Assembly: GCA_002104905.1 (NCBI GenBank)
Contig: MCFE01000145.1
Location: forward strand, 62,001-126,000
DNA from: Basidiobolus meristosporus CBS 931.73
Lineage: Eukaryota; Fungi; Basidiobolomycota
Reading direction: 5' to 3'
Length of the DNA stretch: 64,000 bases
The stretch's first letter is position 1, and the number at the start of each line of letters is the position of its first letter. Positions 1 to 51,469 of the stretch are shown here, in pieces. The notes under the pieces are model-generated. The model did no database searches. It saw nothing but the letters and a program-made list of their open reading frames with translations, and was not told the DNA's origin. Both the position numbers and the translations under genes were made by a program.

Positions 1-189
1 CTGGTAGTACAGATGACGTATATATATGCAGGGTGTTTATTTATAGGGGTTCTGTCTCAAATGTGGGACAACCTTGATATTACTTATATCAAAAATTTGA
101 TGATCACTGATTTGCAATGGCTTGATTTGGATTGCAAAAAAATGGGTTGTTAGGATCATTACAAATTTGAGCAACTCAAAGCAATTGCA

Positions 190-2157
190 TCATCTTCTCC
201 TGGGTTTTTTTCTAACAGGGATTACTACTGAAGCATTTGGTAGTGACTCACTTTGCACACCTATACTGCTTCCTGGCTGACTATCATCTTGGCTACTTGT
301 GTATTTGTAGTCAGTATTTTGCCTCCTAGTTGATGAGTGCGGTGCTGCAGCTTGGCCGCGCTGAATTGCTCCAACTGAACCAACTGAACCAGCCTGTAGT
401 GCCACACGCTGACGCGTTTTTTTACTTGCCAAGGGCTCCGGTGGTTGAGGCACTTCATGTTGGTCATCATTAGTCAGTTCACCAGAAGTAACTTGCTGAT
501 GGTCAGGCAAAACGGCATGCGCAGGTGCGCCTTGATGTGTTGAGATGGCCCTTGGCTGAGTTTGATGTGATGCTGCATGTTGACACAACTTGGTCCGCTC
601 CAATGGACTTGTGTCTAAATGAGCAGTTTGGCGAGTTCTCCTAGTTTTGCTCTGAAGCACATGTATTGACTCAATAGACTTGTTCCGTTGGATAGTGCCA
701 CATTGAGCCATGAGTGCCAAATGATGCCATAGTGTGCCAGGGAGGCCAAGTGAGCCTACACTTGGCCACAGAGTGTGAAACATAGATCTGCATCTTCATG
801 CAAAGCAGCCCCTATGTCTCACTCATTGTGATGGAGAAAATCCATTTTTAGACCTTTTTTTTTAGGACAATGTTTTACAGGATGTGCAAGAGCACTAAAG
901 GTTTGAAGATATGCATCTGGTACTGAATACCCATGGCACTATGAATCTAGCTTGTGTGGCTTGTACCATGTCACAAAAATGCATGGCACCATCTTGGTCC
1001 ACTGGCACTATCTGGCACTATATTTAAATATTAGCCCTAAAGTAAGATCAATACAAAGCACTTATAGTGCCAGATAGTACCAGTGGACCAAGATAGTGCC
1101 ATGCATTTTTGTGACATGTTACAAGCCACAAGAGCAAGATTCAAAGTGCAATGGGTATTGAGTACCAGATGTATATCTTTAATCCTTTAGTGCTCTTGCA
1201 CATCCTGCACAATATTAATCCACAAAAAAACATCAAAAAATGGATTTTCTTCTGCATCATTGGTGAAACACAGGGGATTCTTTGCATGAAAATGCAGATC
1301 TATGTTTCACACTCTGTGGCCAAGTATAGGCTCACTTGGTCACTCTGGCACACTATGGCATCATTTGGCACTCATGGCTCAATGTGGCACTATCCAACGG
1401 AGCAAGTCTAATGTGGGGCGTTCTGGAAAAGGGTGTTGGTGTGGTCTGGACTGACATGCGCTGGCGCGCTGTGATTGCAAGAGATGGTAGGGAATCCAGC
1501 AAGGCGTGCTGGCGCAATCTGGACAATGTTGCTCATGGTCTGTATCCTTCCTCCTGAAGTTCACCATCTGATTCCTCAAGGTATTCACTTACCCTCTGTC
1601 TGATACTTTGGAGCTGTTGCCTGGATGAATCCTGTGTATATTTCTCTCAGAAGCCACTTAGCTCTACTAATATATCATGTAGTACATTAGTCATTTAAGG
1701 CAAAACTCATTCAAAATTTGCTTGGTTCCCAAAGTTGAGGCACAAACAGACGCATCCAGCCCATACTGTGCAAATTGTGCGTGAAATTGTTCCTGCGTGG
1801 CTTCTTTGTCAAATCCCCTCACTCTCAGCTCATTCTTGATTTCAATACTTGTCTTGTTATATATCTTCTTACATACATTGGCTGGCATCTTGATGTAGAA
1901 CTCATGCCACAGCTTTCTACTCAAATTCTTCCATCTTTGTCAACTCTCTGAGGTATCTAGTTCTGCTAGATTAATCAGTAGTGCCCAAATATCTGTCTGA
2001 AGGCTCATCATGGACACTTGGTCCATACTAAAATCATTTGGCAAGAACTCAAATGGATCCAACATTGACTTTTCCGGTCCGGACCGTGCTTGTGAGCTGG
2101 GGGATGGGTTTGTCTGGGTTGTACTAAAGATGAGTTCAGGCTTGGTATGGGGACCAT
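190..2157 (-). pseudogene. Second gene (ORF2) of Pangu-like copy 1, disrupted by stops, a frameshift and a MITE
   Basis: ORF pieces 1940-2254, 1691-1924 and 190-783 match ORF2 of copy 2 and end in RKKPRRR*. Confidence 0.8.
676..1409. mobile_element. 734-bp foldback MITE with AAT TSD
   Basis: Arms 676-1022 and 1063-1409 are near-perfect inverted repeats around a 40-bp loop. AAT flanks both sides (673-675, 1410-1412). The empty site TTGACTCAATGTGGGG is present in copy 4 (reverse, ~52210-52226). Confidence 0.95.
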
Positions 2158-2516
2158 AGCAATGGATTTGGATACTTATACAGCAGTATATTGGCGTCAA
2201 CCTGGTCTTATATGAAATATATATGAAAACTAATGTGATTGTTGAATTTTCCATATATTATGCATGATGCATCTTGGATTGCATTGACATGGATCAGATC
2301 ACATCAATCGCAGATTTCCTTTTTGATTATAGACCTATGATTAAAGCATGAATAAAAGTACCAAGGCATTGTTTGTGGATGATTTTTGCAACATAATGAT
2401 GGGATACATGGGAATTGATGGAGATTTAACCATAATGTACTAAAACTCAGATAAATAACACAGATTGCGCCAAATCAATTCAAGCCACCTCCATACAATC
2501 ATCCACCAATTTTGAT

Positions 2517-3401
2517 ATGACTTACTCATCTGAATGGTCTTTTCTCATCAATCCCATCACTACCACTGGATTTCCTTTTGACACACTAGGGGAGATCTAT
2601 TCCAAGTACTGTGGACCATCAACCCCAATCTACTCAAGGAGATCCCTTGTTAAGCTTCTCTGCTACTACAAGAACTATTGCCCTACAAGGTTTCATCCCA
2701 CCATCCATGGCAACAAAAGTCCTAGAAGCTTTCATTCCCAGCTGACAGCAATGGAGAACCACCTTGCAGAGGGTATGAATGACTTAGAGCAAGCTTGGAA
2801 TACTAGGTTCAGAAGCTCCAATAGACTTCCATATCCCAGAGTGTTCAGCAACAGGTTCCATATAAGGAGTATTTTGGATACCTTCTCAGTGAGGATTAAC
2901 AGACCTTCTAGAGGGCAGAGGCACTTTTATTCTGGCAAGTACAAGGCACACTGTGTGAATTTTCAAGCACTGTCTGAAATGGAGGGTAACATCTTCTGGT
3001 TTAGTGGGCCATTTGCTGGAAGTAGAAATAACAAATAACTCTGGGTAGAGAATCATCCTGAATTCAGTAGAGGGGAGAGATGTATGGCAGACTTAGCCTA
3101 TATAGGAAAGGATTGTCAGAGATTGGGATGTATTACAGCTTATAGGAAGCCAAGGAATGGTGTGCTTAGCAGGAAGCAGAAGCTCTACAATGAGATATTT
3201 AATCATTTCAGAGTGAGGGTAGAGCACACATTTGGATATCTGAAGAGATTCAGCATATTGGCAGGTAAATACAGAGGAAAGTCATATATAGGAGAAAACA
3301 GCAGAATAGGTAAAATAGTTAAGATACTTATTAATGCACAGTATGCTCATACAAGAAGACATCCACTGAGAGAAATGGGTCTGGAGCATTATGAAGAGTA
3401 A
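2517..3401 (+). pseudogene. DDE_Tnp_4-type transposase of copy 1, premature stop at 3036-3038
   Basis: ORFs 2517-3038 and 3084-3401 are in one frame and match the intact transposase at 6284-7168. Confidence 0.9.
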
Positions 3402-3859
3402 ATAAAGCAAGGAAAGCACTATTCTGAGCAATATAAGTAAGATTGAGTAAAATTACCAGTAACTGTATCATACCACTGGCATCATGGTAGAAATTATAGT
3501 GCCAGATTGATCCAGCACCATAAACAGGCTGACACTATGTGGCACTATCCAACGGAACAAATCTAATATTGGAGTTGCAGAGGAATCTCAAAGATATAAG
3601 AGAACTCCTCTTCAGGGAGGAAGTGATGTTTTGAATCCACATTTGAAAGTCAGCAGTCTTACCAAGTTGAAAAACTTATCCTAAATGCTTTCCTCAACTA
3701 AAATATGACTCATTCTAGGTGCAGCTTATTCTATCTCATCTCAGAACTTATTTTTAGTTGGCACACCTGATTAACTTTCATGAGATCATTTTGAAATTAA
3801 TTATTCTGCCAAGCATTCACGCATAGCCTATCATTTGAGATATATCCTGCCACTAACCA

Positions 3860-3933
3860 GTGGCCCATATAAGTTAGTAGTATTATTCAGCCAATGAATT
3901 TGCAAATCCTTACCAGACAGAAATAGGTATATT
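3860..3933 (+). repeat. 5' part of a Gypsy-A LTR split by Pangu copy 2
   Basis: TATTATTCAGCCAATGAA...CCAGACAGAAATAGGTATATT matches the LTR-A interior (cf. ~11700-11750). Confidence 0.7.
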
Positions 3934-4676
3934 AGACTTGTTCCATCGTACTGTGCCAGGGCGCGTGGCAGGATCCGCGGTCGCAAAGAACGATTGGGCG
4001 CAATATTATAGTTACCAGAAGGCAGGATTGTTCTTGGACAATTTTGCACTATGCGGGACGATCTTGCACACTATGGCACAAACTGACACAATGAGGTTGG
4101 CGCGGATGATCGTGCCAACTTGTAATGTTTGCATCACGTGCGCGATCTGATACCGCTATAATGGCAGGTAAAATCCGGTATTTGGATATGTTTCTTTAAT
4201 GTAAATGGAAATAAATGTGTATCACACTATAAACTACACTGATACTTACCATTTTGGTTACCCTCACTCCAATTGGACGGTATCTCAGTGGTTAATTGGT
4301 CCAAAAGTATCCTGAAGCCAGCAGCCCCCAATTGGCTCAATGACTACTGAAAAAGCTACCTGATTTGCCATTAAATATCCCATTTTGCCAATTGAGCAAG
4401 TAAATCCCTGATCCTAGTGATTGGACATGGTGTCATAGCTAGCACGCAAGCAATCGTGTAGGTGCAAAACAGATCCAATAGCTGCACTGGTAGTACATAT
4501 GACGTATATATATGCAGGGTGTTTATTTATAGGGGTTCTGTCTCAAATGTGAGACATCCTTGATATTACTTATATCAAAAATTTGATGATCACTGATTTG
4601 CAATGGCTTGATTTGGATCGCAAAAAAAAAGGGTTGTTGGGATCATTACAAATGTGAGCAATTCAAAGCAATTGCA

Positions 4677-5924
4677 TCATCTTCTCCTGGGTTTTTTTCT
4701 CACAGGGATTACTACTGAAGCATTTGGTAGTGACTCACTTTGCACACCTATTCTACTTTCTGGCTGACTATCATCTTGGCTACTTGTGTATTCGTAGTCA
4801 GTATTTTGCCTCCTAGTTGATGAGTGCAATGCTGCAGCTTGGCCGCGCTGAATCGCTCCGACTGAACCAACTGAACCGGCCTGTAGTGCCACGTGCTGAC
4901 GCGTTCTTTTACTTGCCAAGGGCTCCGGTGGTTGAGGCACTTCATGTTGGTCATCATCAGTCAGTTCACCAGAAGTAACTCGCTGATGGTCAGGCGAGAC
5001 GGCACGCGCAGGTGTGCCTTGACGTGTTGAGATGGCCCTTGGCTGAGTTTGATGTGATGCCGCATGTTGACGCGACTCGGTCCGCTCCAATGGACTCGTG
5101 TCTAAATGAGCAGTTTGGCGAGTTCTCGTAGTTTTGCTCTGAAGCGCGCGCGTTGACTCAATGCGTGTTGACTTGACGCGGGGCATTCTGGTAAAGGGTG
5201 TTGGCGTACTCTGGACTGACGTGTGCCGGCGCACTGTGGTTGCAAGAGATGGTAGGGAATCCAGCGAGGCGTGCTGGCGCGATCTGGACAATGTTGCTTG
5301 CGGTCTGTATTCTTCCTCCTGAAGCTCACCATCTGATTCCTCAAGGTATTCACTTACCCTCTGTCTGATACTTTGGAGCTGTTGCCTGGATGAGTCCTGT
5401 GTATATTGCTCTTAGAAGCCACTTAGCTCTACTAATATATCACGTAGTACATTAGTCAATTGAGGCAAAAACTCATTCAAAATCTCTTTGGTTCCCAAAG
5501 TTGAGGCACAAAAGGACGCGTCCGGCCCGTACTGTGCAAATTGCGCGCGAAATTGTTCCTGTGTGGCTTCTTTGTCAAATCCCCTCACTCTCAGCTCATT
5601 CTTGATTTCAATACTTGTCTTGTTATATATCTTTTTACATACATTGGCTGGCATCTTGATGTAGAACTCATGCCACAGCTTTCTACTCAAATTCTTCCAT
5701 CTTTGTTGACTCTCTGAGGTATCTAGTTCTGCTAGATTAATCAGTAGTGCCCAAATATCTGTATGAAGGCTCAACATAGACACTTGGGCCATACTAAAAT
5801 CATTTGGCAAGAACTCAAACGGATCCGACATCGACTTTTCCGGTCCGGACCGTGCTTGTGAGCTGGGGGATGGGTTTTGTCTGGGTTGTACTAAAGATGA
5901 GTTGAGGCTTGGTATGGGGACCAT
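4677..5924 (-). pseudogene. ORF2 of Pangu-like element: ~415-aa putative nuclear DNA-binding partner protein with one in-frame stop at 5412-5414
   Basis: ORFs 5412-5924 and 4677-5291 are in the same frame (1248 nt, 416 codons). The sequence between them reads *EQYTQDSSRQQLQSIRQRVSEYLEESDGELQEEEY without another stop. C-terminal RKKPRRR. Confidence 0.8.
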
Positions 5925-6283
5925 AGCAATGGATTTGGATACTTATACAGCAGTATATTGGCATCCACCTGGTCTTATATGAAATATATATGAAAACTAA
6001 AGTGATTGTTGAATTTTCCATATATTATGCATGATGCATCTCAGATCGCGTTGACATGGATCAGACCACATCAATTGCAGATTTCCTATTTGATTATAGA
6101 CCTATGATTAAAGCATCAATAAAAGTACCAAGGCATTGTTTGCAGATGATTTTTGCAACATAATGATGGGATACATGGCAATTGATGGAGATTTAACCAA
6201 AATGTGTTAAAAATCAGAAAAATAACGCAGATCTTGCCAAATTGATTCAAACCGCCTTTATACGATCATCCATCAATTTTAAT

Positions 6284-7168
6284 ATGACTTACTCATCTGA
6301 ATGGTCTTTTCTCATCAATCCCATCACTACCACTGTATTTCCTTTTGACACACTGGAGGAGATCTATACCAAGTACTGTGGACCATCAACCCCAATCTAC
6401 TCAAGGAGATCCCTTGTTAAGCTTCTCCGCTATTACAAGAACTATTGCCCCACAATGTTTCATCCCACCATCCATGGCAACAAAAGTCCTAGAAGCTTTC
6501 ATTCCCAGCTGACAGCAGTGGAGAACCACCTTGCAGAGGGTATGAATGACTTAGAGCAAGCTTGGAATACTAGGTTCAGAAGCTCCAATAGACTTCCATA
6601 TCCCAGAGTGTTCAGCAACAGGTTCCATATAAGGAGTATTTTGGATACCTTCTCAGTGAGGATTAACAGACCTTCTAGAGGGCAGAGGCACTTTTATTCT
6701 GGCAAGTACAAGGCACACTGTGTGAAGTTTCAAGCACTGTCTGATATTGAGGGTAACATCATCTGGTTTAGTGGGCCATTTGCTGGAAGTAGGCATGACA
6801 AAGCACTCTGGGTAGAGATTCAACCTGAATTCAGTAGAGGGGAGAAATGTATGGCAGACTTAGCCTATATAGGAGAGGATTGTCAGAGATTAGGATGTAT
6901 TATGGCTTATAGGAAGCCAAGGAATGGTGTGCTTAGCAGGAAGCAGAAGCTCTACAATGAGATATTTAATCATTTCAGAGTAAGGGTAGAGCACACATTT
7001 GGATATCTGAAGAGATTCAGCATATTGGCAGGTAAATACAGAGGAAAGTCATATATAGGAGAAAACAGCAGAATAGGTAAAATAGTTAAGATACTTATTA
7101 ATGCACAGTATGTTCATACAAGAAGACATCCACTGAGAGAAATGTGTCTGGAGCATTATGAAGAGTAA
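6284..7168 (+). CDS. PHIS/Harbinger-like DDE transposase (DDE_Tnp_4), 294 aa from the first ATG, intact
   Basis: Motifs SILDT, FYSGKYKAHCVKFQ, GSRHD, MADLAY and YNEIFNHFRVRVEHTFGYLKRF, with D-D-E retained. Confidence 0.92.
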   Translation: MTYSSEWSFLINPITTTVFPFDTLEEIYTKYCGPSTPIYSRRSLVKLLRYYKNYCPTMFHPTIHGNKSPRSFHSQLTAVENHLAEGMNDLEQAWNTRFRSSNRLPYPRVFSNRFHIRSILDTFSVRINRPSRGQRHFYSGKYKAHCVKFQALSDIEGNIIWFSGPFAGSRHDKALWVEIQPEFSRGEKCMADLAYIGEDCQRLGCIMAYRKPRNGVLSRKQKLYNEIFNHFRVRVEHTFGYLKRFSILAGKYRGKSYIGENSRIGKIVKILINAQYVHTRRHPLREMCLEHYEE

Positions 7169-7351
7169 ATAAAGCAAGGAAAGCACTATTCTGAGCAACA
7201 TAAGTAAGATTGAGTAAAATTACCAGTAACTGTATCATACCACTGGCATCATGGTAGAAATTATAGTGCCAGATAGTGCCGTAGGGTGCCAGATCAATCC
7301 GGCACTATCAACAGGCTGGCACTATGTGGCACTATCCAACAGAACAAGTCT

Positions 7352-7560
7352 AATAAATAAGATGGAGTTAGGTGATGATGATGCAGCTCAATGGGTTATC
7401 AGCCTCAACCTACATTAGGAATTTCAAATAGTCAGTAGCAAATCTGGCTAAGTGTATATAAGGAGCTGCTGGAGCCTCAATAAAATCAGTTCATACTTTA
7501 GTAAATGCAATATTAGTTAATCACCATATTCCTTTACAACTCTGATATCAAAGCCTACAA
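7352..7560 (+). repeat. 3' part of the Gypsy-A LTR split by Pangu copy 2
   Basis: GGTGATGATG...TATATAAGGAGCTGCTGGAGCCTCAATAAAATCAGTTC matches LTR-A (13830-14020). Confidence 0.8.
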
Positions 7561-7564
7561 TGGC

Positions 7565-10557
7565 TTAGTGTATGTGTCTCAATGAAGTGCATATTAGGTC
7601 TCATCAATGTCAAGAGTTCCAAAATTGCATCAGACTTGTTCTGTTGGATAGTGCCACATTGAGCCATGAGTGCCAAATGATGCCATAGTGTCCCAGAGAG
7701 GCCAAGTAAACCTATACTTGGCCACAGAGTGTGAAACATAGCTTGGCATCTTCATGCAAAGCAGCCCCTGTGTTCCACCTATCATGCAGGAGAAAATCCA
7801 TTTTTTGATGGTTTTTTGTGGATCAATGTTGTGCAGGATGTATAAGAGCACAGAAGAGCTGAAGACATGCATCAGGTACTCAACACCCATGGCACTGGGA
7901 ATCTAGCTCCTGTGGCTTGTAACATGTCAGAAAAATGCAGGGCACTATCTTGGTCCACTGGTAGTATCTGGCACAATATCTTATTATCAGCTCTAAAGTA
8001 AGATCAATACAATGCACTTATAGTGCCAGATAGTACCAGTGGACCAACATAGTGCCATGCATTTTTCTGACATGTTACAAGCCACAGGAGCTAGATTCAG
8101 AATGCCATGGTTATTGAGTACCAGATGCATATCTGCAATTCTTTTGTACTCTTACACATCCTGCACAACATTGACCTGAAAAAATGGTCCAAAAATAGAT
8201 TATCTCCAGCACAATGGGCAAAACACAGGGGCGGCTTAGCACAAAGATGCAGAGCTATGTTTCACACTCTGAGGCCAGGTATAGGCTCACTTGGCCTCCC
8301 TGGCACACTATGGCATCATTTGGAGCTCTTGGCTCAATGTGGCACTGTCTAATCCAACAAGTCTATTCTATTGTGTATCCAAATGTATGCTCTACTCCCA
8401 CCCTGAAATGAATACAGATCTGATTGTATAACATCTATTTTATGCTAAGCAATCCATTGCTTGGCATTCTATGGACTCTGATACATCCTAATTTCTAACA
8501 ATCTTCCCCTGTGGTGGCTAAGTCTGCCATTCATTTCTCCCTCTGAATGATTCACAACACAGAGTGCTTTGTCATGCCTACCTCCTTCAAATGGTTAACT
8601 AAGCCAGATGGCATCATGATCAATGCCTGAGAGTGCTTGAAACTTCACACTGTTTGCTTTGTATTTGCCAGATTAAAAGTTTCTTCACCCTTCAGAAGGA
8701 CTGTTAGCCCTCACTAAGAAGGTATCCAAAGCACTTATGATATGGTACCTGTAGCTGAGCACTCTGGACTATGGAAGTCTGTGGGAGCCTCCAAGTCTAG
8801 TTTTTGAAGCTTGTTTCAAGTAATTCATGCCCTCTGTGTAATGGGTCTGCATTGCTGTCAGCTAGGAATGGAAGCTGCTAGGATTTTTTTGCAATAGATT
8901 GGAGGATGAAACTATGAAGGGCAATAGTAGTTTCAATTGCTGAGAAGCCTATAGAGATATCTGCAAATAGAATGGAATGCAAGGTCCACAGCACCTCAAT
9001 TAAATCTCCTCTGATGTGTCAAATGGAATTCCAGTGGTAGTGATGGAGTTGATGAGAGAGCACCTTTAGATAAGTAAATCAACTTCAGAATTGAAAATGA
9101 TTGCAGCAGAATGAGCTATGCTGATTTGGCACTATCTGCTGAGTTCACATGAACTTCCAAGCATCAGAATTCAGTCTGTATATATTACTGTACATCTCTT
9201 CACTATGTTTCAAAAAATAATTTTAAGCAATGGCCTAAGAGGGAATCTGCAACTGATGTGTTCTAATGTATGTCAATGCAATTCAAGATGCATATTGCAA
9301 AATGTTTGAAAGTCCAATTATCACACTGGTTTTATGTACATTTTACTTAATGCCAGATATATTGAAATATGCCACTATATAGGCTACTAAATCTATCACT
9401 TTAATCCCTATTGCAAGTCTCAACTCATTGTTATCAGCAGCCATACATAATCTGTCCTCCAGCTTAAAGGCATGGTATGGTCCAAAAAGTCAATGTTGAT
9501 CTATTGGTGTTGTTGCCTAATAATTCTGGTGTTTCACAAGTGTTACATTGAGCCTTCATTCAGATTTTTGGGTACTACTCATTAAACTGGTACACCTGGA
9601 TAACTCAGAGAGTCAACAAAGATGGAAGAATATGTGTAGAATGAGGTGGCATGAGCTCCACATTTGCATGCCAACAGATATATGTCAGATGATATAAATA
9701 AGTCAAGTATTAAAATCAGCAATGAGCTGCAAGTGAGGGAATTTAGAGAGTAAGCAGTATCCAAAGAATTTGATGTTCAATTTGCTCAGGGCAGGCTAGA
9801 TGTATCCATTAGTCACTCAATTTGGGAACCAAGGAGATTTGAATAAGGTTTGTCTCCAAAACTAATAAAATGCATGATAAATCAGTAGAGCCAACTTGCT
9901 TCCAAGAGCAATATATACAGGGCACCTGAGGGCAACAGTCCCTGAGTATGAGACCAAAGGTAAGTAATACCTTGAGGAATCAGAAGATCAGCTTTGACAA
10001 GAAGAATTGAAACTGCAGGCAACCAATATCCAGATTGCACCAGTACATCTTGCTGGATCCCTTACCAGACCCTGCAATGCCAGTGTGCAGGGACATGCCA
10101 GTTCAATTTACATTAACATCCTTGACCAGAATGCCAAGCAACAGGCCAACTCATATTGGGTCATTGGACATGGTCCAGTAAGCTATCAGAACTTGCCTAA
10201 CTTCTCAGTTTTTTCACTATTTTAATGGAGCAAGCCAAGCTGAATATGCTTAAAGCATCACATTGGACTCAACTAAGGGCCATACCAAATGTTGTGTTGT
10301 GCCAGCCTTGCCTTATACCTAAAGTACAGCAACTTACTTCTGGAGAACTGACCAACAAAGACCCATTGTCAGCACCTCCTTCATAGGAGCTTTTGGCAAG
10401 TCAAAGTGTGTGTCAGCATGTGGCACTTCAGGCTAATTTTATAGCATCCTCTGGAGCAATTCAGCATGGTCAAGCTATAGCACTGCGCACATCAACCAGA
10501 AAGAAAAATACTTACCATACATACACAAGTAGCCAAGATGATAGTCAATTATAATAT
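7565..10557 (-). mobile_element. Old, diverged Pangu-subfamily relic (transposase on -, ORF2 on +)
   Basis: 8370-9000 aligns to the reverse of the transposase. 9600-10557 aligns to ORF2 (SESQQRWKNM..., ...AGCCAAGATGATAGTCAA). Confidence 0.7.
7632..8364. mobile_element. 733-bp foldback MITE, second copy
   Basis: Same long inverted arms and loop as 676-1409. Flanks ATC/ATT (one mismatch). Confidence 0.9.
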
Positions 10558-11592: not shown

Positions 11593-14023
11593 TGTTATAA
11601 TCTGCCGCTTGAATGTTTAAGTTAGATCAGTTTTTAGTCAAATCAATTACTATATGCTTAGGTTATCAGTATATCAGTATTATCTATGAAATCAGTAGCA
11701 TTATTCAGCAATGAATCAGCAGATCCTTATCAGACAGAAATAGATATATTAAGCAAGATCTTATTGGGTGACGATGATTCAATCAAATGAGTCATCAGCC
11801 ACAACATACATTAAGAGATACAATTAGTCAGCAATTGATCTGGCAAAATGTATATAAGCAGCTGCTGGAACCTCAATAAAAATCAGTTCAAGTTTTAGTG
11901 AACACAATACTAGCTAAACTCCCTATTCCTCTACAACTCATATACCAAGACTTGCAACATTGGTAGCAGCAATAACCAGAAACCTCCCTCCTGAAGAATG
12001 AAGAAACCACCCTCAACATGTTGGACATTGCTCAAGAATGAACTTGCTAAGCTGCCAAGCCTAAGAATACCAGACTTCAGAAAAGAGTTCACTCTGTGCA
12101 CAGATGCTTCAGATTATGCAATTGGTGGAGTGCAGAGCCAAGAACATGAGGGAAAGGACTACCCTGTTGCCTTTGAATCCAAGAAAGTTAACTCAGCAGA
12201 ACAAAACTATCCAGTGCATGAGAAGGAGATGCTTGCTATAATACACTGTTTGAAGACATGGAGATGCTATATTGAAGGAGTCAAATGCACTGTGAAGACT
12301 GATCATGCCTCCCTCAAGTATATATTTACTCCAAAGGTACTCTCTAGAAGAATGACAAGATGGTGTGAATATATTCAGCAATTTGACCTGGAGATTGTCT
12401 ACTGTGCTGGAAAAAACAACACGGTTGCTGATGCCTTATCAAGATTAGATCAAGTTGCACAACTCCACTTGGTGCATGAGTCAGATTGGCCTAGCCTATT
12501 ACCAAAGTACATGGAGAACCAAGCCATTCCTAATGAGGTGGATGAAGATATCAAGAAGATTATCCGTGATGGAGCCAGCAAATTTGTTGTACAGGATGAA
12601 ACACTCTACCAAATTGTTGATGGAAGCCCTATTGCCTATTGTCCTTATGTTGCTAGCCTGGATTTAATACATAAGCTACACAATGGATATGGACATCTTG
12701 GGATTGAAGGAACCTATAGCCTTGTGAAAGCCAGAGCATGGTGGCCCAGAATGAAACAAGATATTGAGAAGCTAGTGAAAACACACCCAAACTGCCAAAT
12801 CAATCAAGGCCAGCCACAAAGAATTGCCAAGCTCTTCTCTTTGGAGCCTGTAAGACCATTTGAGAGATGGGTAATTGACTTTATTGGCAGACTGCCAACT
12901 ACCAGGAAATGCAACCGTTGGATCCTAGTAGCAATTGACCATGCCACTAAATGGCCAGTTGCTAAAGCTGTACTAATAGCTAGTGAGCAAGAAGTTGCAA
13001 GTTTCATTTACCATGAGATCCTGATGAAGTTTGGATGCCTTGTGGAGGTCTTATCTGATAGAGGAGCAAACTTTATGGCAAAGACATTAGAGGCTTACCT
13101 GGAAATGCAGCAGATCAGACACCTGAAAGCCTTGGCATATCACCCCAGAACTAATGGAGTCACTGAGAGGTTTAATGGATTATTTGGAAAAATGCTGACC
13201 AAGTATGCAAATGGAGTTATCAGTAGATGGGATGAGTATATAGACCAAGCACTCTTTGCATGCAGAGTCAGAGTACACAACACCACCCAGCAATCACCAT
13301 TTTACTTAGTTTATGGATGTGAACCAAGGATTCCAGGAGATCTCACACAACCCAGGCTTACAGATGCCTTTGAAGATGAACTTAGTCAGCCAAGTAGACA
13401 CCAGCAATTGGAACAAAGATGTCAAGAGGCACAGACCAAAGTATCTCAAAGCGCAGAAAAGATGAAGCAGAGATTTGATAAGACTATAGCACCAGAAGCA
13501 TTGACAGTTGGGAACTTTGTATTGCTAAGTAATAACACTTGGAAGAAGTTTGAGCCACAATGGACAGGACCATTCAAGATCATCAGAGAATGTCCACTTG
13601 CAACTTACCAACTGGTGGACAAACAAGTTAATATCCAGGAACACTTAGTGCATAGGTGTTATGATCTGCCACTTGAATGTTTAAGTTAGATCAGTTTTTG
13701 GTCAAATCAATTAGTATATGTTTAGGTTATCAGTACATCAGTATTATCTATGAAATCAGTAGCATTAGTCAGCAATGAATCAGCAGATTCTTATCAGACA
13801 GAAATAGATATATTAAGTAAGATTTTATTGGGTGATGATGGTGCAATCAAATGAGTCATTAACCACAGCCTACAATAGGAAATACAATTAGTCAGCAATG
13901 GATCTGGCAAAATGTATATAAGGAGCTGCTGGAACCTCAATAAAAATCAGTTCAAGTTTTAGTGAATACAATACTTGCTAAACTCCCTATTCCTCTACAA
14001 CTCTGATACTAAGACTTGTAACA
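11593..14023 (+). mobile_element. Internally deleted Ty3/Gypsy element (family A) with two LTRs and AAGC TSD
   Basis: LTRs 11593-11959 and 13657-14023 (TG...CA). PBS TGGTAGCAG at 11961. AAGC on both flanks. gag/PR/RT and the PPT are missing. Confidence 0.92.
11998..13689 (+). CDS. pol: Stop-free 563-aa Gypsy RNase H-integrase ORF (deletion fusion)
   Basis: LCTDASDYAIG (RNase H), HNGYGHLG, VIDFIG, SDRGANF, NGVTERFN (integrase DDE), SPFYLVYG, WTGPF. The ORF runs into the 3' LTR. Confidence 0.85.
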   Translation: MKKPPSTCWTLLKNELAKLPSLRIPDFRKEFTLCTDASDYAIGGVQSQEHEGKDYPVAFESKKVNSAEQNYPVHEKEMLAIIHCLKTWRCYIEGVKCTVKTDHASLKYIFTPKVLSRRMTRWCEYIQQFDLEIVYCAGKNNTVADALSRLDQVAQLHLVHESDWPSLLPKYMENQAIPNEVDEDIKKIIRDGASKFVVQDETLYQIVDGSPIAYCPYVASLDLIHKLHNGYGHLGIEGTYSLVKARAWWPRMKQDIEKLVKTHPNCQINQGQPQRIAKLFSLEPVRPFERWVIDFIGRLPTTRKCNRWILVAIDHATKWPVAKAVLIASEQEVASFIYHEILMKFGCLVEVLSDRGANFMAKTLEAYLEMQQIRHLKALAYHPRTNGVTERFNGLFGKMLTKYANGVISRWDEYIDQALFACRVRVHNTTQQSPFYLVYGCEPRIPGDLTQPRLTDAFEDELSQPSRHQQLEQRCQEAQTKVSQSAEKMKQRFDKTIAPEALTVGNFVLLSNNTWKKFEPQWTGPFKIIRECPLATYQLVDKQVNIQEHLVHRCYDLPLECLS

Positions 14024-20344: not shown

Positions 20345-23300
20345 TTTGCTTAGGGCTTCCATTAACAATTTGGTAGAGTGTTTCATCCTGTACTACAAAC
20401 TTGCTGGCTTCATCCCGGATTATGTTCTTGATATCTTCATCCATCTCATTAGGAATGTCTTGGTCCTCAAAGTTGAGTTGTACAACTTATTCCAATCTTG
20501 ATAAGGCATCAGCAACTGTGTTATTTTTTTCAGGGCAGTGCAGTGGTGTATAGGTCCAAGGGTGAGATACGTCCAACGCTTCTCAAGTGTTTTGTGTGTG
20601 GGGTGTTCACTGGTTGCAATAACCTCTGGCAAAAGCTTGCTAGGAATACTTGGGTTCTGTCTCTAATCTAATGTGAAGGGGAATAAAGCCACAAGCTTGT
20701 CAAGGGAAAACTATTGAGCTACAATCCCCAACTTAGTTGGCGTCTTAAGAAAAGTATGTGCTGGGTTCAGCGTCCTTTGAGATGACAATGTACTAAAGCT
20801 TCCAAAGTCAAAACAACTGTAAACTCCACCAGCAGGGACTTGATAAGAATGCAGCTGAGGTCAATAGTTACAAAGACAGAAAAGTATCTTTGCCTGTACA
20901 AGAACAAACTTGGGAAAGCATCAAATATAATAAAAGATACCTACTCTGAGTATTCCTCACAAGTAGTGCCTCCAAGGTCAGTTGGCTGTCAGCGCGGTTT
21001 CCTGGGAGTGTCCTGTGGTCTGGGGTTGGAAGTTCAGGTAGCAGCAGGTAGCAGTGATCACACTAATCAACAAGTTGGTATATTGATAAAAGGGATGATG
21101 ATTTATTGTTGAGGGATAGCCTCCCTTATATACTTTTCTTGCTGGCTAAGTGATTACTAATCATGGTGTTCCAGAAGGTTCCGGATATCAATAGAAATCT
21201 TAATGACATCAGAATGACCTAAGAATGTTCTAAGTAGGTGCCAGAAGGTTCTAAGAGGCACAGCACATCCAACCAATCAGGAATCAGTATTCTGAAACCT
21301 GTGTAACATGGGGATACCATAAATGGTATGGAAATGGTAGGGATGGTGACATGGGTTGATCATGTGTCACGGGTACTGGCGCAGGTACTTGCCTAATATA
21401 GAAGCACTTGTAGCTAGTAATCTACATAAAGTGAGGGGTAACTTATGCAATAAGGTAAGCAGGTGTGATAGTCAGCCGGCTTATGGGATAGTACTGATTG
21501 GGTAAGACCAATGGGATAAAACTAAAATAAGTGTAGTAGAGATATAGGGAAGTGGAAAATAAGGGAATGAGCACATTTGTCAGTGGGTGTCACTGTCACC
21601 CCACTACAGCAGTAGACAATTTCCAAGTCAAATTGTTGAATATATTCACTCCATCTTGTCATTCTTCTAGAGAGTACCTTCAGAGTAAATACATACCTGA
21701 GGGAGTCATATTCAGTTTTCACAGGGCACTTGACTCCTTCAATTTAGCATCACCATGTCTTCAAACAGTGTATTATAGCAAGCATCTCCTTCTCATGCAC
21801 TGGATAGTTTTGTTCTGCTGAGTTCACTTTCTTGGATTCAATGGCAAAAGGGTAGTCCTTTGCCTTGTGTTCCTGGCTCAACACACCACCAATTGCATAA
21901 TCTGAAGCATCTGTGCACAGAGTGAACTCTTTTCTGAAGTCTGGTATTCTTAGGCTTGGCAGCTTAGCAAGTTCATTCTTGAGCGTCTGGAAGGCAGTCT
22001 CACAAGCTATGTCCCACTTGTAGGCATTGTCTTTCTGGAGGATATCAGTTAATGGGGCTGCAATACTTGCAAAAGACTTGACAAATCTCTGTTAATAGGA
22101 AAGCATTCCAAGGAATGATATGAGCTCTGATATTCTATGGGACTGCTTCAGATTCTTGATAACTTCAACCTTCTTAGGGTATAAGGTTACTCCTGTGCTA
22201 GTCACTATGCGTCCCAGAAATTCCACATGTTCCTTGAAGAATTCACACTTGAGTAGCTTGCCATAAAGCTTGTTCTTCCTTAGCTTCTTCAAGACCTTTT
22301 CAATGAGCACCATGTGATCCTCTTCTGTCTTTCTGCATATCAATATATCATCTAGGTAGATCATGACAAACCTGTCTAAGTACTCTTGGAAGACAGTCTG
22401 CATCAGGGTCATGAATATTGGGGGGAATTGGTGAGGCCAAAACGCATGACTAGGTACTTGTAGTGTCAATATCTAGTCCTGAATGCTGTCTTTGGGATGT
22501 CATCTGGCTTCACCCTAATCTGGTTGTATCCTGATATGAGGTCAATCTTGCTGAAATTGGTGGCTCCATTGAGTTGGTCCAAAAGCTCATCAATCCAAGG
22601 TATGTGGCACTTAATTGTCATGGTAACTGAGCTGAGCGCTCTGTAGTCAATTCACATCCTAAGTGTTCCATCCTTCTTCTTCACAAAAAGTACTGGCACT
22701 CCCCAAGGTGACTTGCTGGGTCTGATATATCCTTGCTGTGGTAATTGAGCTATTTGTCTGTTCATCTCTTCCAGCTCCAATGGATTCATTCTGTAAGGTG
22801 TCTTACTCACTGGAGGTTTATCTGCTGTTTCAATGGCATGACCCATGCCTCTGACTGGTGGTAGGTTTACAAGCTCATCTAGAAATACATCTAAATATTC
22901 CTTCAAAAGAGTCTGGACCTTCTGGGGTACTGGAGTAGAGAAATCCTCCTGTAATACTTCCATGAGGAACATCTGGGTGCCTTTTCTTAGTGGTTTACAG
23001 AACTGTGTCTTGCTAATCTCACTTGTTTCACACATGCTGGAACTGACAAAGTTTAAATCCAGTCTGGCAGGTAATAGCTCATAGGTCTTGTTGTCCTTCT
23101 GGATCTGAGTAGCATGGGTTCTCCAGTTCATTGATGGATTACAACAGAATAGCCAGGTTTTCCCAAGTACAAGGTTAAACTTGCGGTTCCTAAACATATA
23201 GGCCTGCAGATCTTCTTCATAGTCATCAATCTTCATCCTTACTGGCTGGGTAATACAGTTGACTATGTGAGGGTTCACATCAGCTGTCAAGACTGAAGTT

Positions 23301-24442
23301 GATTTGGTGGGTTCCAAGTTGATTCCAGCATTCAAAGCAGATTGCTCTGGCATGTACTCATGCAATGCTCCTGAGTCAACCATGATCTTGGCAGGTACTT
23401 CATTGATTACTCCATTCAAGTATAATAGCTTTCCTGAGTTTGAGGTCATCTGGGATAGGTATTCTTCTGTCATATGGAAGGTGAATTCTGAGCCTTTTTC
23501 AAGTTCATCCTCCATGTTACTATGCTCCAGGGCCTCAATATGGTTAAATGTCCTTGATGGCTGGTTTTCATTTCTTCTCTGAGGGCTGCACTTTCCAATA
23601 TGTCCCCACTGGTGGCAAATAAAGTGAAGTCCTTTCTTTTTACATTCTTCTGGAGTAGGATTCTATTATGCATCTATTTCCATTGGCACTGCTTCTGATT
23701 GTATTCTTGGACCATTCCTTTCTGTCTGAGTGTCTTCAACTTTCTTCTTGGTAGTGTCTGCTGATGTGAGGGCTCAAAGGCATCCTGAATCTCTGACACA
23801 AACCCATCCCAGGTAGAGATTGTAGAGCATCCCATCATAGTGGCTGACCGGATCTTGTTGTGGTACCACTGTATAGCTACATTGACCAGGTAAGAGGCTG
23901 CATAATGTAACTTGCTTTCTGGAGCAATTCCCTTAGCCCTGAAAGCTTCTTCAATCTGGAAGAGCCAAGTTCCCAAGTTTTCATTGACTCTTCCATGGTA
24001 CCAGTTGACCTTCACACTTAAGTTGCACTTGGTAGGGTTTTGCTGGCTTTGGGACATGGTAGTCCTTACTTGTTGCTGTTGGGCCAGGATTTGCTGCATA
24101 GCATTCTTTCATTCTTGGTTTTCAGACATCTTGAGGGAGGCTTCTTCTTTCTTCAGGTGGGATACTTCTAGTTATTGCTGCTTCCAATGTTACAAGCTTT
24201 GGTATAAGAGTTGTAGAGGAATAGGGAGTTTAGCTGGTATTGTATTCACTAAAACTTAAACTGATTTTTATTGAGGTTCCAGCAGCTCCTAATATACATT
24301 CTGCCAGATCAATTGCTGACTAATTGTAGTTCCTAATGTAGGCTGTGGCTAATAACTCATTTATTTGCATCATCATCACCCTATAAGATTCTACTTAAAA
24401 TCTATTGCTGTCTGATAAGGAATTGTTGATTCATTTGCTGAC
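20345..24442 (-). mobile_element. gag-pol: Gypsy-A element, 3'-truncated, with gag-PR-RT-RNase H pseudogene
   Basis: Partial 5' LTR from 24188, then PBS and gag ATG at 24129. Retrotrans_gag-like 23674-24099, protease IMVDSGA, RT IYLDDILI, RNase H identical in type to 11998-12420. Confidence 0.9.
20539..21608 (-). repeat. Solo LTR, family B (1070 bp), GCAG TSD
   Basis: TG...CA ends. GCAG on both sides. Removing it restores Gypsy-A RNase H sequence. Matches 30539-31599. Confidence 0.92.
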
Positions 24443-33500: not shown

Positions 33501-34795
33501 TCAGAAATACCTATAGATGGACAAATATGCAGCACCTTTGGTTGTTCACCTGGAGGCTCCAAGACACAAAAAATATGCAACTGCCTACCCCCACAAATAT
33601 ACATAAGCTTGTGGCTTTGTGGCAGCTGGTGAGTTCTTTAGGATCTGGATCCCTAGATTCTCTGAGATAGCAGAGCCAATCTACTGACTACAGAGAAAGA
33701 ATACCCCATTTATCTGGGGAGAAGAACAAGAAGAAGCCAGGCAATCACTAAAAGATGCCTTAGTATCTCTACCAGTTCTGTGCCCTCTTGAGTATCAGAA
33801 CACTGAATGCCCACCTATTTTGACAGTTGATGCAAGCCCTATAGAAGCAGGAGCACTACTTGGCCAAAATGATGAAGATGGCAACCTCTATGCCTGCAGA
33901 TATGAGAGCTGCTTATTCTCTCCTAGAGATCAAAGATACTCACAGATGAAGAGAGAGCTACTAGGAGTTGTGAAGATGCTGAGGAAGCTGAAGTTACAAC
34001 TCTACATGACACATTTCATCCTGGAGACAGATGCCAAGCCACTTATAGGAATGATCAACAACCCTGACCTGCCTGATGATGCTAAAAGCCAATGAATGCA
34101 TGGCTGAAAATGCTTGACTTTGAGGTCAGACATATCCCTGGCAAGACAAATGTTGTGACTGATGCACTCTCCAGGAAGGGACTATAATTATTTGAAGACT
34201 TGGACCCTCACTTTGATGATATGATTGATGTAGAGATTTAACAGATTGCCATCAAAGACCAAGAGAGAACTGCCTGGAGCCTAATTAAAGAATATTTAAG
34301 GACACTCAAGAAACCTAATTGGATGGAAATTCATGAGTTTAGATTTCTCAAACAGAAGTCACATCACTACCATCTCAAATAAGATATTCTCTTTAAACAA
34401 GTGAAGCCTGAACTTATGCCAAGAAGAGTAGTTTCTAACCCACAAGAGCAACTGGACATCATGTCAAGTATCCATCAAGGAGTGCCGGGAGGACATAGAG
34501 GACAAGAAGCCACCTACAATACCATAGCTCAGAGGTATTACTGGAAAAATATGTACTATGATATTGAAAACTTTGTTGAGTCATGTGCAGCCTTCCAGAA
34601 GAGATCCTCCAGGCATTACAAAGAGCCACTGCATCCTACTTACACATTCTGTCTATGGCAAAAGGCAGGTAGTGACCTTGTCCAGATGCCAACAGCTGGA
34701 TCAAGGAAGTACCTGATTGTTGCTAGAGATGACCTTAGTGAATGGGCAGAAGCTCAAGCCTTGCCCAACAACAAGAGCCATATTATATGGAGATT

Positions 34796-36025
34796 TGTGG
34801 TAATGGAAAGTATTTCATTACTACAATATCTCAAAACCACCATTGCACTTATTTCTTTATTTTGCTTTTTTGCTATTGTAACACACAGGTGAAAGATCAA
34901 CAATTTACAACTTTGAAGGACAAATACTCCAGACCCTGACAAGTAATCCACCTAAGAATATCATGGCATACAGAACACACAGTAGCCAACACATGTTTTA
35001 AATTGCAGCTCATTTGAAGCAGTACTTAAGGAGTTATAACCAAAGAAGTCCATTTATTTTATATACTAGGTCACTATTGCTAGAATTACTATGGTGACTT
35101 TGACTGCATGTCACTTTTGAACCAGCCAATCAAATCACGTAATATTCTCACAGGTGCTACGCCTACAGTCAATCTGCGCCACTGCTATACTTTAGCTTTG
35201 TATCATGTGTATTGCTTATGCAATTACCAAAAAACTTTGATCCTTCAGAAATTTTATATATATGACTTCCCAAGCTGGAAAATAAAGGAGAGCCTCTCTT
35301 TCCAGAATCTCCACACTATGTTACAAGTTTAAGGTTATAAGACTTCCCCCACATCACTTACACTGTTGAGTATTCCAACTTTGCTCAGTACCACATCAGT
35401 AAAGATGCTGCAAAGCTCACAAAAATCTACTCTGAGTTCTACAAGAAACTACCACTTTTCTGTTGGAAAAGTCCCCTCTAAGAAGCCCCTTTACTCTAAA
35501 GACACCCCTTTAGTCTAAAAGCCCCTTCAGAGACCCCTTTAAGAAACCTGTTTACTCTGAAGAAGCCCCTTTAGGCACCCCTTTGGTGTAAAGTCCTCCT
35601 TAGAGACCACTACAAGAAGCCCCTTTACTCTAAAGACACCCCTTTAGACACGCCTTTAGGTCTAAAGACCCCTTCCTAGACTTCTACAACACACCCCTTT
35701 GGGCTAAAGGGGAATGCAGAATTTCTATATTAGGAAATATTCCTGCAGAAAGGAAAGTGACTTTCAAATAAGGAAAAGTTACTATAAAAGTAAATAAGCC
35801 TATTAGTCAGCAGAAGGTCAGAACACTGCTGAAGAAGTGAGAAACACTGCCTATAGTATATTTTGAGCCTAAGATTGAGGATGTTAGTGAAAGTTGTATC
35901 TTCCATTGATATATCAAACTTGCAATAAACTATTTTAGTATTAGCATACGGGAAGTTGATGTTTATTGTTGATTAGCCTCTACATTGTAGAACAAGCCCC
36001 AAACTAATCATAATACAACACAACA
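34796..36025. repeat. Solo LTR, family C (1230 bp), GATT TSD
   Basis: TGTGG...CAACA ends. GATT at 34792-34795 and 36026-36029. Removing it restores integrase IWRFILEDIICRFG. Confidence 0.9.
35470..35710. repeat. Imperfect tandem array of CCCCTT(T) units inside LTR-C
   Basis: Repeated AAGAAGCCCCTTTACTCTAAAGACACCCCTTTAG-like units. Confidence 0.8.
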
Positions 36026-37959: not shown

Positions 37960-40526
37960 AGACTTGTTCTGTTGGATAGTGCCAGATCAATCTGGCACTA
38001 TAGTTTCTACCATCATGCCAGTGTCAGGTTATAGTTACTGATAACTTTACTCAATCTTATTTATGTTGCTCAGAGTAGTGCTTTCCTTGCTTTATTTACT
38101 CTTGATAATGCCCCAGACACATTTCTCTCAGTGGATGTCTTCTTGTACAAATATACTCTGCGTTGATAAGTATCATAACAATTTTACCTATTCTTCAGTT
38201 TTCTCCTATATATGACTTTCCTGCATATTTAGCTGTCAGTAAGCTGAATTGCTTCATATATCCCAAAGTATGTTCTACCCTCACTCTGAAATGATTAAAT
38301 ATCTCATTGTAGAGCTTCTGCTTCCTGCTAAGCATGCTATCCCTTGGCTTCCTATAAGCTGTAATACATCCTAATCTCTGACAATCCTCTCCTACATAAG
38401 CTATGTCAGCCATACATATCTCCCCTCTACTGAATTCTGGATGATTCTCTACCCAGAGTGCTTTGTCATGCCTACTTCCAGCAAATGGCCCACCAAACTG
38501 GATGATGTTACCCTCAATGTCAGACAGTGCTTGAAACATCACACAGTGTGCCTTGTACTTGCCAGAATAAAAGTGCCTCTGCCCTCTAGAAGGTTTGTTA
38601 ATCCTGACTGGGAAGGTATCCAAAATACTCCTGATATGGAGCCTATTGCTGAACACTCTGGGATATGGAAATCTATTGGCGCTTCTGAACCAGGTACTCC
38701 AAGTTTGCTCTAAGTCATTCATACCCTCTGCAAGGTGGTTCTCCATGCTATCAGTAGGGAATGAGCACTTCTAAGACTTTTGTTGCCATGGATGGTGGGA
38801 TCAAACCTTGTAGGGCAATAGTTTTTGTTATAGCAGTGAAGCTTAACATGGGATCTCCTAGAGTAGATTGGGATTGATGGACCACAGTACTTGGTGAAGA
38901 TCTCCTCTAGTGTGTCAAAAGGAAATTCAGTAGTAGTAATGGGATTCATGAGAAAAGACCATTCAGATGGGTAAGTTGTATTAGAATTGGTGGAGGATTG
39001 GCTGAGGTGATTTGATGCAATTGGGCATGATCAGCTTTATTTTTCTGATTTCCATTCATTATGATTAAATCCTCATTAATTACTATGTATCCCATTATTA
39101 TGTTGCAAAAATCATCCTCAAACAATGACTGGGTATTTTTATTGATGTTTAATGCACAAGTCTATAATCAAATAGGATGTCTGCAATTGAGGTGATCTGA
39201 TCCCTGTCAATTCAATTCAAGATCTATCATGCATAATATATGGGAAATTCAACAATCACATTAGTTTTCATATATTTTTCATATAAGACCAGGTTGATGC
39301 CAATAAACCACTCTATAAGTATCCAAATCCATCACCATGGTTCCTATACCAAGTCTCAACTCATCTTTAGTTCAACCCAGACATAACCCATCCCCCAGCT
39401 CACAAGCACAGTCTGGACCATATAAGGCAATGTTGGATCCATTCAAGTTCTTGCCAAGGTAAGCTGGTGTGATAGTCAACCGGCTTATGGGATAGTACTG
39501 ATCAGGTAAGACAAATGGGATAAAACTAAAATAAGTGTAGTAGATATATAAGGAAGTAGAAAATATGGGAATGAGCACATCTGTCAGTGGGTGTCACTGT
39601 CACCCCACTACAGCATGGCCAAGCTGCAGCATTGCACTCATCAACTAGGAGGCAAAATACTGACTACAAATACACAAGTAGCCAAGAGGATAGTCAACCA
39701 GAAAGTAGTTTAAGTGTGCAAAGTGAATTGCTACCAAATGCTTCAGTAATAATCCCTGCAAGAAAAAATCCTAGGAGAGGATGATGCAATTGCATTGAAT
39801 TGCTATTATTTGTTATGATCCAAACAATGCATTTCTTTTGCAATCTGCATTGAGCTATTGCAAATCAGTGATCACTAAATTTTTGATATGAGCAATGTTA
39901 AGGTTGACTCACAGTTGAGACAGGATCCCTATAAATAAACACCCTTCATATGTATACACCTTCTGTGGCACCAGTTCAGCCATTTGATCTGATTTGCACT
40001 CATACAATTGGTTGCATGCTAGCTATGACACCTTGTCCATTGGCTAGGATCAGGGATTTACTTGCTTAATGGGCAAAATGCAATATTTGATGGCAAATCA
40101 GGTAGCTTATGTATGGTCAAAGAGCCAATTGGGGACTGACAGCTTCAGGATACTTTTGGACCAATTAACCACTGAGATACCATCCAACGGGAGTGATGGT
40201 AACCAAAATGGTAAGTATCAGTGTAGTTTATAGTGTGATATGCATTTATTTCCATTTACATTGAAGAAACATACCCAGATACCGGATTTTACCTACCATA
40301 ATAGAGGTATCCGATTGCACACATAATGCAAGCATTACAAGTGGGTGCAATCATTTGTGCCAACCTCATTGTGTCAGATTGTGCCATAGTGTGCAAGATT
40401 GTCTCAAATGGTGCAAAGTTGTCCAAGAGCAATCCTGCCTACTGGTAGCTACAATATTGCTCCAAATCACTCTTAGAGACCACTGATCATGCCACATGCC
40501 CTGGCATGGTATGATGGAACAGGTCT
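37960..40526 (-). mobile_element. Pangu-like copy 3, internally deleted, AAT TSD
   Basis: AGACTTGTT at 37960 and AACAGGTCT at 40526, with AAT on both sides. Broken transposase ~38090-38990. The 5' half of ORF2 is replaced by an LTR-B stub. Confidence 0.9.
39458..39612 (-). repeat. LTR-B terminal stub within Pangu copy 3
   Basis: Ends GTGTCACTGTCACCCCACTACA, as at 21608 and 53309. Confidence 0.85.
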
Positions 40527-49940: not shown

Positions 49941-50226
49941 ATACCCTATGAAAAATAATTTGATCCCATGGGTGAATCCAATGCAGATCAGCCAACAAGA
50001 ACCATTGAGGAGACCACAATAATATTTGCAGCTTGGAATTAATAGACTTGTTCTGTTGGATAGTGCCACATAGTGCCAGCCTGTTTATGGTGCTGGATTG
50101 ATCTGTCACTCTACGGCACTATCTGGCACTATAATTTCTACCATCATGCCAGTGGTATGATGGAGTTACTGGCAATTTTACTCAATCTTACTTATGTTGC
50201 TCAGAATAGTGCTTTCCTTGCTTTAT

Positions 50227-51110: not shown

Positions 51111-51469
51111 ATTAAAATTGGTGGATGATTGTATGGAGGTGGTTTGACTCAATTTAGCGCAATCTGCATTATTTATCTGATTTTTAATACATTATGGTTA
51201 AATCTCCATCAATTGCCATGTACCCCATCATTATGTTGCAAAAATCATCCCCAAACAATGCCATGGTACTTTTGTTGATGCTTTAATCATAGGTCTATAA
51301 TCAAATAGGAAATCTGCAATTGATGTGATCTGATCCATGTTAACGCAATCCAAGATGCATCAAGCATAATATATGGAAAATTCAACAATCACATTAGTTT
51401 TCATATATATCTCATATAAGACCAGGTTGATGCCAATATACTGCTGTATAAGTATCCAAATCCGTTGCT

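Follow-up and report, generated by a model that had tools for sequence, protein, structure and literature searches.

A 64,000-nucleotide stretch of the Basidiobolus meristosporus CBS 931.73 genome was analyzed (assembly GCA_002104905.1, contig MCFE01000145.1, positions 62,001 to 126,000 of the forward strand; this whole stretch is called the window in the following, and all positions refer to it). The DNA transposon at positions 3934-7351 carries a transposase gene and, in divergent orientation, a second open reading frame (ORF2), which is a real gene of the transposon family and encodes an orphan protein. By transposase domain and anatomy the element fits the Pangu group of the PHIS (PIF/Harbinger-ISL2EU-Spy) superfamily. 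The explanation that we favor, and consider rather probable as a whole, combines this assignment with an accessory role of the ORF2 protein in nuclear import or in the recognition of the ends. The copy at 3934-7351 itself is ordinary and defective in ORF2, and the assignment of ORF2 to known DNA-binding folds, which had been proposed in an initial annotation of this DNA, is not demonstrated. The analysis adds a stop codon in ORF2 that is common to sibling copies, the finding that the same codon is open in older relatives, and a conserved, phased array of the motif ATAGTGCC beside the right end of the element.

ORF2 and the stop at codon 171

ORF2 can be followed on the minus strand from 5924 to 4677 as 170 codons, a TAA triplet, 244 further codons and a terminal stop, without any frameshift. 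The initial annotation had described a partner frame of about 415 codons broken by a single stop, and exactly this was found (coordinates are given in Table 1). The distal part is also open in copy A of the family, over 161 amino acids (aa) with 88% identity.

At codon 171, the studied copy (copy B) carries TAA, and copies A and E carry TGA. The annotation would have been refuted if no copy of the family were open at this codon; this refutation fails, as CAA was found there in three diverged copies of the window, namely C (the 70%-identical family), F (at ~16.6 kb) and G (at 47 kb), none of which is otherwise intact. Because two siblings of 93-94% identity stop at codon 171 too, the break in ORF2 appears to be older than the insertions of A, B and E, and the stop is probably not a private decay of the studied copy. 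The three copies are read as independent insertions, because they lie in different flanking DNA and copy E has its own AAT/AAT duplication. The pattern at codon 171 fits an ancestral CGA that lost its CpG in either direction. In the simplest history, the source of A, B and E would already have carried TGA, and copy B would have acquired one more G-to-A change. The alternative, an intact CGA source followed by independent decay, requires the same C-to-T change twice, in A and in E, and two further changes in B, which by a rough estimate is ~20-150 times less likely. An intron that removes codon 171 was considered and rejected: the sole in-frame GT...AG candidate is 36 nt long and the frame simply continues through it, so that a point mutation is the simpler explanation.

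The source of the A/B/E sub-lineage thus probably made the N-terminal domain of ORF2 only, or nothing. Most likely the sub-lineage spread while encoding only ORF2 residues 1-170, and it presumably used ORF2 protein from other copies. Among A, B and E, the studied copy is the least decayed one; it has kept 25 CpGs that A and E have both lost.

The ATAGTGCC array beside the right end

The subterminal array next to the right terminal inverted repeat (TIR) of the studied element (Table 1) was found again on contig L001 from another sequencing run (Logan SRR949943). There, an array at 1073-1250 lies at the same position, 3′ of a 294-aa transposase with 61% identity, and contains four copies of the motif spaced by 10 bp and two more in inverted orientation. 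The non-coding DNA of this contig shows otherwise no alignment to the studied element. Because a phased short repeat has been conserved at 61% transposase identity, the ATAGTGCC array is a likely protein-binding site. It parallels the Harbinger3_DR system, in which the Myb-like protein binds a 9-bp subterminal motif (as summarised in PMC9710019); the array in the studied element is a candidate binding site.

Element ends and target-site duplications

The element boundary was set at the A of AGACTTG, which gives a length of 3,418 bp. The inverted repeats open with AGACTTGTTC; their first 10 bp are perfect, and 29 nt show 79% complementarity. With the same boundary, a perfect AAT/AAT target-site duplication (TSD) is obtained for four further members of the family in the window, i.e. 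a miniature inverted-repeat transposable element (MITE) of 734 bp (676-1409), a MITE of 211 bp (46782-46992), the full copy E (50044-54513) and the deleted copy D (37960-40526). Therefore, the TSD is 3 bp long and of the form A-N-T, with AAT being preferred. One MITE is flanked by ATC/ATT. The studied copy has ATT on the left and AAT on the right, both A-N-T with an unlike middle base, and this mismatch is most simply a later substitution. A 24-nt motif of the ends occurs nine times in the window, compared to zero occurrences expected.

The annotation had called the element complete, which is overstated: ORF2 is broken here as well as in the siblings, and the two TSDs differ by one base. The head-to-head layout across ~360 bp was found as described, with the two start codons separated by 359 bp. 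The spacer between them is presumed to be a bidirectional promoter. A promoter scan of the spacer with bacterial models, which are irrelevant to a eukaryote, yielded nothing above shuffled sequences, and an Rfam scan of the element gave no family match. On the left side, the subterminal region 3959-4676 is conserved with 93% identity in copy E and 85% in copy D.

The element is sharply split with respect to CpG: the transposase gene contains one CpG in 885 bp (observed/expected ratio, o/e, 0.03), and ORF2 together with the left end reaches an o/e of 0.6-0.8.

Transposase

The transposase gene had been annotated as short and intact, and its uninterrupted frame of 294 aa with a Pfam match to DDE_Tnp_4 (E 2.5e-24) agrees with this; DDE_Tnp_1 is matched as well (E 1.6e-10). 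Aligned from end to end (98% coverage), it is 61% identical to a 294-aa protein of an unrelated sequencing run. Therefore, the short transposase is full length for its lineage. Further matches were a 367-aa metagenomic protein with 36% identity and, in third place, a cyanobacterial transposase (E 1.7e-16). The catalytic DDE triad consists of D121, D192 and E236, which do not vary in the alignment. N-terminal of the DDE core lies a conserved region of 119 residues, in which no recognised DNA-binding domain was found with Pfam. A word-index search with the transposase returned three matches only, all on contigs too short for an ORF2, and a metagenome scan with the transposase alignment found no relative.

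Selection on the two genes

Ratios of nonsynonymous to synonymous substitution rates (dN/dS) were calculated pairwise by the Nei-Gojobori method against diverged copies, and the two wrong frames of the same alignments served as control; neutral decay on the two terminal branches enters into all comparisons. For the transposase, dN/dS was 0.44-0.49, compared to 0.63-1.2 in the two wrong frames. For the N-terminal domain of ORF2, values of 0.22-0.70 were obtained in the true frame, which ranked below both wrong frames in all four comparisons. For the tail, the values were mixed relative to the off-frames. This pattern is weak but consistent and suggests constraint on the N-terminal domain in active lineages, with hardly any on the tail.

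Classification and comparison with known systems

Pangu elements have ANT TSDs, TIRs of 11-40 bp that usually start with AG or GG, and a mean length of 3,487 bp (Han 2015, Mob DNA 6:12, PMC4482050). They carry two ORFs, the second of which has "no known motifs", and they are present in other phyla too (PMC4482050). According to PMC12730594, Pangu corresponds to 'Harbinger2' in Repbase. The studied family shares with this group a DDE-only transposase, the 5′-ANT-3′ TSD, a TIR that starts with AG and lies in the range of 11-40 bp, a length close to the mean (3,418 bp vs. 3,487 bp) and a second ORF without recognisable motif. The annotation as a two-gene Pangu-type element with ANT duplications is therefore in line with domain, TSD, TIR, length and motif-less second ORF. 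Unlike the known Pangu elements, the studied family resides in an early-diverging fungus, is very abundant and has MITE derivatives; ascomycetes and basidiomycetes were the only fungi listed in the 2015 Pangu survey (PMC4482050).

With the PIF/Harbinger elements, such as Harbinger3_DR, Ping/Pong and PIF, the studied element has in common the two genes, a transposase of the DDE_Tnp_4 type, a 3-bp TSD, short subterminal repeats and a partner protein in the range of 300-400 aa. It differs from them by its ANT target instead of TWA, by its transposase of 294 aa instead of 400-500 aa, and by an ORF2 in which Myb/SANT/MADF was not detectable in Pfam, PDB-profile and fold searches, the latter with poor models. 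Insertion sequences of the IS5 family share the DDE_Tnp_4/DDE_Tnp_1 core, and a preference for ANT targets has been noted for IS5 (PMC4482050). The cyanobacterial transposase among the matches is IS5-like. In contrast to the single-gene IS5 elements of ~1.2 kb, the studied element is eukaryotic, has two genes and lies in a CpG-depleted genome among Ty3-type retroelements.

Composition of the ORF2 protein and search for its fold

The peptides quoted for ORF2 in the annotation, i.e. DIWALL...TSESQQRWKNLSRK, TSIEIKNELRVRGFDKEATQEQF, an acidic patch and the terminal RKKPRRR, are all present in the translation. Residues 1-35 form a low-complexity leader, followed by a predicted all-helical domain (~36-170) with W58, W76 and W84. 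The distal part holds the acidic patch EYLEESDGELQEEEY and a low-complexity tail of ~200 residues rich in S, T, R and Q, and ends with RKKPRRR. This C-terminal stretch is the only lysine/arginine cluster in either protein; the transposase is without one. The isoelectric point (pI) of the tail is 11.4. In the 70%-identical family, the three tryptophans and the block SESQQRWKN are kept, as well as the short tail islands TSGELT, YTSSQDDSQ and HVALQA.

The annotation had read the N-terminal domain by eye as Myb/SANT-MADF/trihelix followed by SAP/HeH. For sequence searches and modelling, ORF2 was used as separate pieces on either side of codon 171. With Pfam at E-values up to 10, no Myb, SANT, MADF, trihelix or SAP domain was found in either piece, in their sub-pieces or in any copy of the window (10 copy fragments); the Pfam families listed for ORF2 were at chance level only (DUF5995 with E 0.01-0.09, Gag_MA and YfcL). 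Against PDB sequences, phmmer gave the RRM of DAZAP1 (E 1.9), and a profile search returned only an invertase (E 1.3), both by chance. When the 170-aa piece was compared exhaustively by phmmer with 1.84 billion protein representatives, no true relative appeared; the only two matches, to proteins consisting of fasciclin repeats and RRM repeats, respectively, were rejected as spurious, as their scores sum 5-7 weak repeats. Neither two runs of an ESM Atlas feature search with ORF2 nor a metagenome scan with its N-terminal piece provided a usable match or a relative, respectively.

AlphaFold2 reached a predicted local distance difference test (pLDDT) of 50 with an 11-row alignment of window copies, and 59 for ORF2 residues 35-131 alone. 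Both of these low-pLDDT models are all-helical, with helices at ~45-64, 70-89, 93-113, 122-130 and 145-168. Foldseek against the PDB (run twice), a wide VIA-align search and an Atlas shape search with the poor ORF2 models gave no Myb, SANT, MADF, trihelix or SAP entry. The entries returned were helical hairpins and bundles of a generic kind, which stayed below the background quoted for the tools (E >=2, Z <8, TM-score ~0.5). Since the ORF2 models are poor, the blank fold searches are a failure to test the proposed folds and not a refutation. For the stretch 108-134, which had been named SAP-like, the best weak database matches were β1-α1 segments of RRM domains; therefore, the motif seen by eye is not discriminating. 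Taken together, the Myb/SANT-MADF/trihelix assignment received no backing from Pfam, PDB sequence and profile searches, phmmer or fold searches on low-confidence models, and the SAP/HeH assignment found no SAP match in Pfam, its stretch weakly fitting RRM segments instead.

Possible roles of ORF2

As a model for the favored explanation, PIF/Harbinger elements possess a Myb-like partner that binds both a subterminal motif and the transposase and imports the latter into the nucleus (as summarised in PMC9710019). By analogy, the transposase of the studied family would cut at the TIRs and insert at ANT, and full-length ORF2 would be the accessory factor that supplies a nuclear localisation signal (NLS) for a transposase without one. 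ORF2, with or without the transposase, would recognise the ATAGTGCC array beside the right end. The studied copy, with its ORF2 cut at codon 171, would depend on ORF2 from elsewhere. Several observations weigh against this explanation. No homologue of ORF2 turned up in any search, so there is no link by descent to the Harbinger partners, and no confident fold was obtained from ESMFold2 or from AlphaFold2, whether or not the shallow alignment was supplied. With a pI of 5.7, the helical domain is mildly acidic, an uncommon property among DNA-binding domains. Overall, ORF2 is under weak selection (dN/dS of the N-terminal domain 0.2-0.7), with mixed values in the tail that are indistinguishable from those of the off-frames. 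The sub-lineage with truncated ORF2 has transposed at least three times; therefore, the full-length protein was either supplied in trans or is not essential. A complex prediction of the transposase with ORF2 residues 35-170 gave no answer (score 0.00 with an uncertain partner fold), which is not evidence either way.

As a first alternative, the N-terminal domain of ORF2 could be a diverged Myb/SANT-MADF/trihelix domain followed by a SAP/HeH module. The ANT-type element would then have a DNA-binding partner in the style of Harbinger. We regard this as rather unlikely. By eye, the spacing F38-x19-W58-x17-W76 and the block TSESQQRWKNL resemble a Myb-type repeat and its recognition helix, and the 70%-identical family has kept these residues. 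In the low-confidence, all-helical models, the helix 93-113, an 8-residue loop (114-121) and the helix 122-130 look SAP-like. Against this stand the lacking match to any such family in Pfam, PDB sequence, profile and fold searches, three modelled helices that, with ~20 residues, are longer than those of a Myb repeat, the equally weak fit of the 'SAP' stretch to RRM β1-α1 segments, and the pI of the domain. In favor of this reading, MADF-type partners are known for rapid evolution and for being missed by BLAST (PMC9710019). That the Pangu partner in general might be an extremely diverged Myb/SANT-like, possibly also SAP-like, factor reading the ATAGTGCC array and carrying the NLS for the 294-aa transposase is likewise rather unlikely.

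Alternatively, ORF2 could be an adaptor that is specific to this lineage and does not recognise particular DNA sequences. Binding of the transposase would fall to its helical domain, its tail would provide the NLS and unspecific affinity to DNA or chromatin, and the 119-residue N-terminus of the transposase would read the ATAGTGCC array. The orphan status of ORF2, the contrast between an acidic to neutral helical domain and a very basic tail with its RKKPRRR end, and the conserved region before the DDE core speak for such a division of labor. Since the complex prediction gave no answer, Pfam detects no DNA-binding domain in the transposase N-terminus and DNA binding of either protein is only putative, it is a doubtful possibility. 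We consider it improbable that the stop at codon 171 is tolerated or even used, so that the 170-aa N-terminal domain or a read-through product suffices for transposition or regulates it and ORF2 is not a dead gene rescued in trans. In favor of this, three independent insertions share a stop at this codon, its position coincides exactly with the end of the predicted helical domain, and the downstream 244 codons are still open in the studied copy. This open tail is, however, uninformative, as the estimated chance of ~23 private substitutions creating no new stop in 244 codons is ~1/3; moreover, the three diverged copies have CAA at codon 171, and the truncated product is without the only NLS-like cluster. 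We also know of no read-through context at this site. Very improbable, finally, is an ORF2 that is unneeded for movement and represents a fast-decaying passenger or a chance frame in the GC- and CpG-rich half of the element. Weak overall dN/dS, a tail that behaves like the off-frames, missing homologues and continued transposition of the sub-lineage with broken ORF2 would fit this. On the other side, 415 codons interrupted only once are far more than chance would give at 45% GC, frame and key residues persist in the 70%-identical family, the N-terminal domain has its lowest dN/dS in the true frame in all comparisons (4/4), and Pangu elements of other phyla carry a second ORF, too (PMC4482050).

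Related copies and surrounding DNA

By self-comparison, at least seven further full or partial copies of the family were detected in the 64-kb window, plus MITEs (Table 1). The presence of at least five family members in 64 kb suggests clustered insertion or a transposon graveyard. Huge PIF-Harbinger expansions have been described for Basidiobolus genomes (PMC5751038). Copy A (1-3564) and the studied copy belong to the same sub-lineage and lie in tandem, in the same orientation and 366 bp apart. The 734-bp MITE at 676-1409 sits in ORF2 of copy A with an AAT duplication, and the MITE at 7632-8364 is located 278 bp right of the studied element. The 211-bp MITE at 46782-46992 has the same 10-bp termini and AAT/AAT, and is nested in a degraded family copy. 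A repeat of ~1.08 kb with TG...CA ends, possibly a solo long terminal repeat (LTR), is present at 52228-53304, 20543-21609, 31597-30538 and 44923-44161; its insertion in ORF2 of copy E lies within ~20 bp of the position of the MITE insertion in copy A.

Table 1. Features of the studied transposon and of related copies in the window.
Feature	Position	Strand	Description
Left TSD	3931..3933		ATT, A-N-T type
Left TIR	3934..3958	+	perfect AGACTTGTTC, then imperfect extension including GTGCCA
Degenerate GTGCCA motifs, left end	3953, 4075, 4112
Left subterminal non-coding region	3959..4676		downstream of ORF2; CpG o/e 0.71
ORF2, distal part	4677..5411	-	244 codons and terminal stop (4677-4679)
Internal stop, codon 171	5412..5414	-	TAA
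ORF2, proximal part	5415..5924	-	170 codons
Divergent intergenic spacer	5925..6283		359 bp, AT-rich (33% GC)
Transposase	6284..7168	+	294 aa, uninterrupted frame
Subterminal array	7263..7337		six (A)TAGTGCC motifs, 10-bp phasing, three per strand
Right TIR	7327..7351	-	…GAACAAGTCT
Right TSD	7352..7354		AAT
Copy A	1-675 + 1415-3567		94%; MITE inserted in ORF2
Copy E	54516-53305 + 52227-50043		93-94%; 1.08-kb unrelated repeat inserted in ORF2
Copy D	37960-40526		85-88%; internal deletion
70% family copy	10547-8376
Family fragments	16.5, 25-26, 46-49 kb
Non-autonomous elements of 733-734 bp	676-1409, 7632-8364, from 44211		ends AGACTTGTTC...GATAGTGCCACATTGAGCC shared

The rest of the window consists of Ty3-type retroelement debris, and a host gene was not encountered anywhere in the 64 kb. 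Genes of Ty3-type LTR retrotransposons with RT_RNaseH, Integrase_H2C2, rve and aspartyl protease domains are located at 11998-13689, 22092-24099 and 34401-34892, and one Ty3-type element truncates a diverged Pangu copy at ~25188. Only 12 ORFs of at least 160 aa are present, 11 of which could be placed, all in transposable elements: ten belong to the studied family or to retroelement genes, and the one at 38195-38746 lies in copy D; the twelfth, at 41575-42267, has no Pfam match. CpG is strongly depleted in the window (o/e 0.11).

Implications for the Pangu group

Pangu is a little-studied branch of the Harbinger superfamily, in which the role of the second gene has been blank since 2015. If ORF2 were indeed a diverged Myb/SANT-like protein, this would bring Pangu and Harbinger together under one two-protein mechanism and would give the motif-less second ORF a function. 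With many copies, MITE derivatives and a compact transposase of 294 aa, the genome of B. meristosporus could serve to test the two-protein mechanism in the ANT-targeting branch and to test the target of the partner protein.

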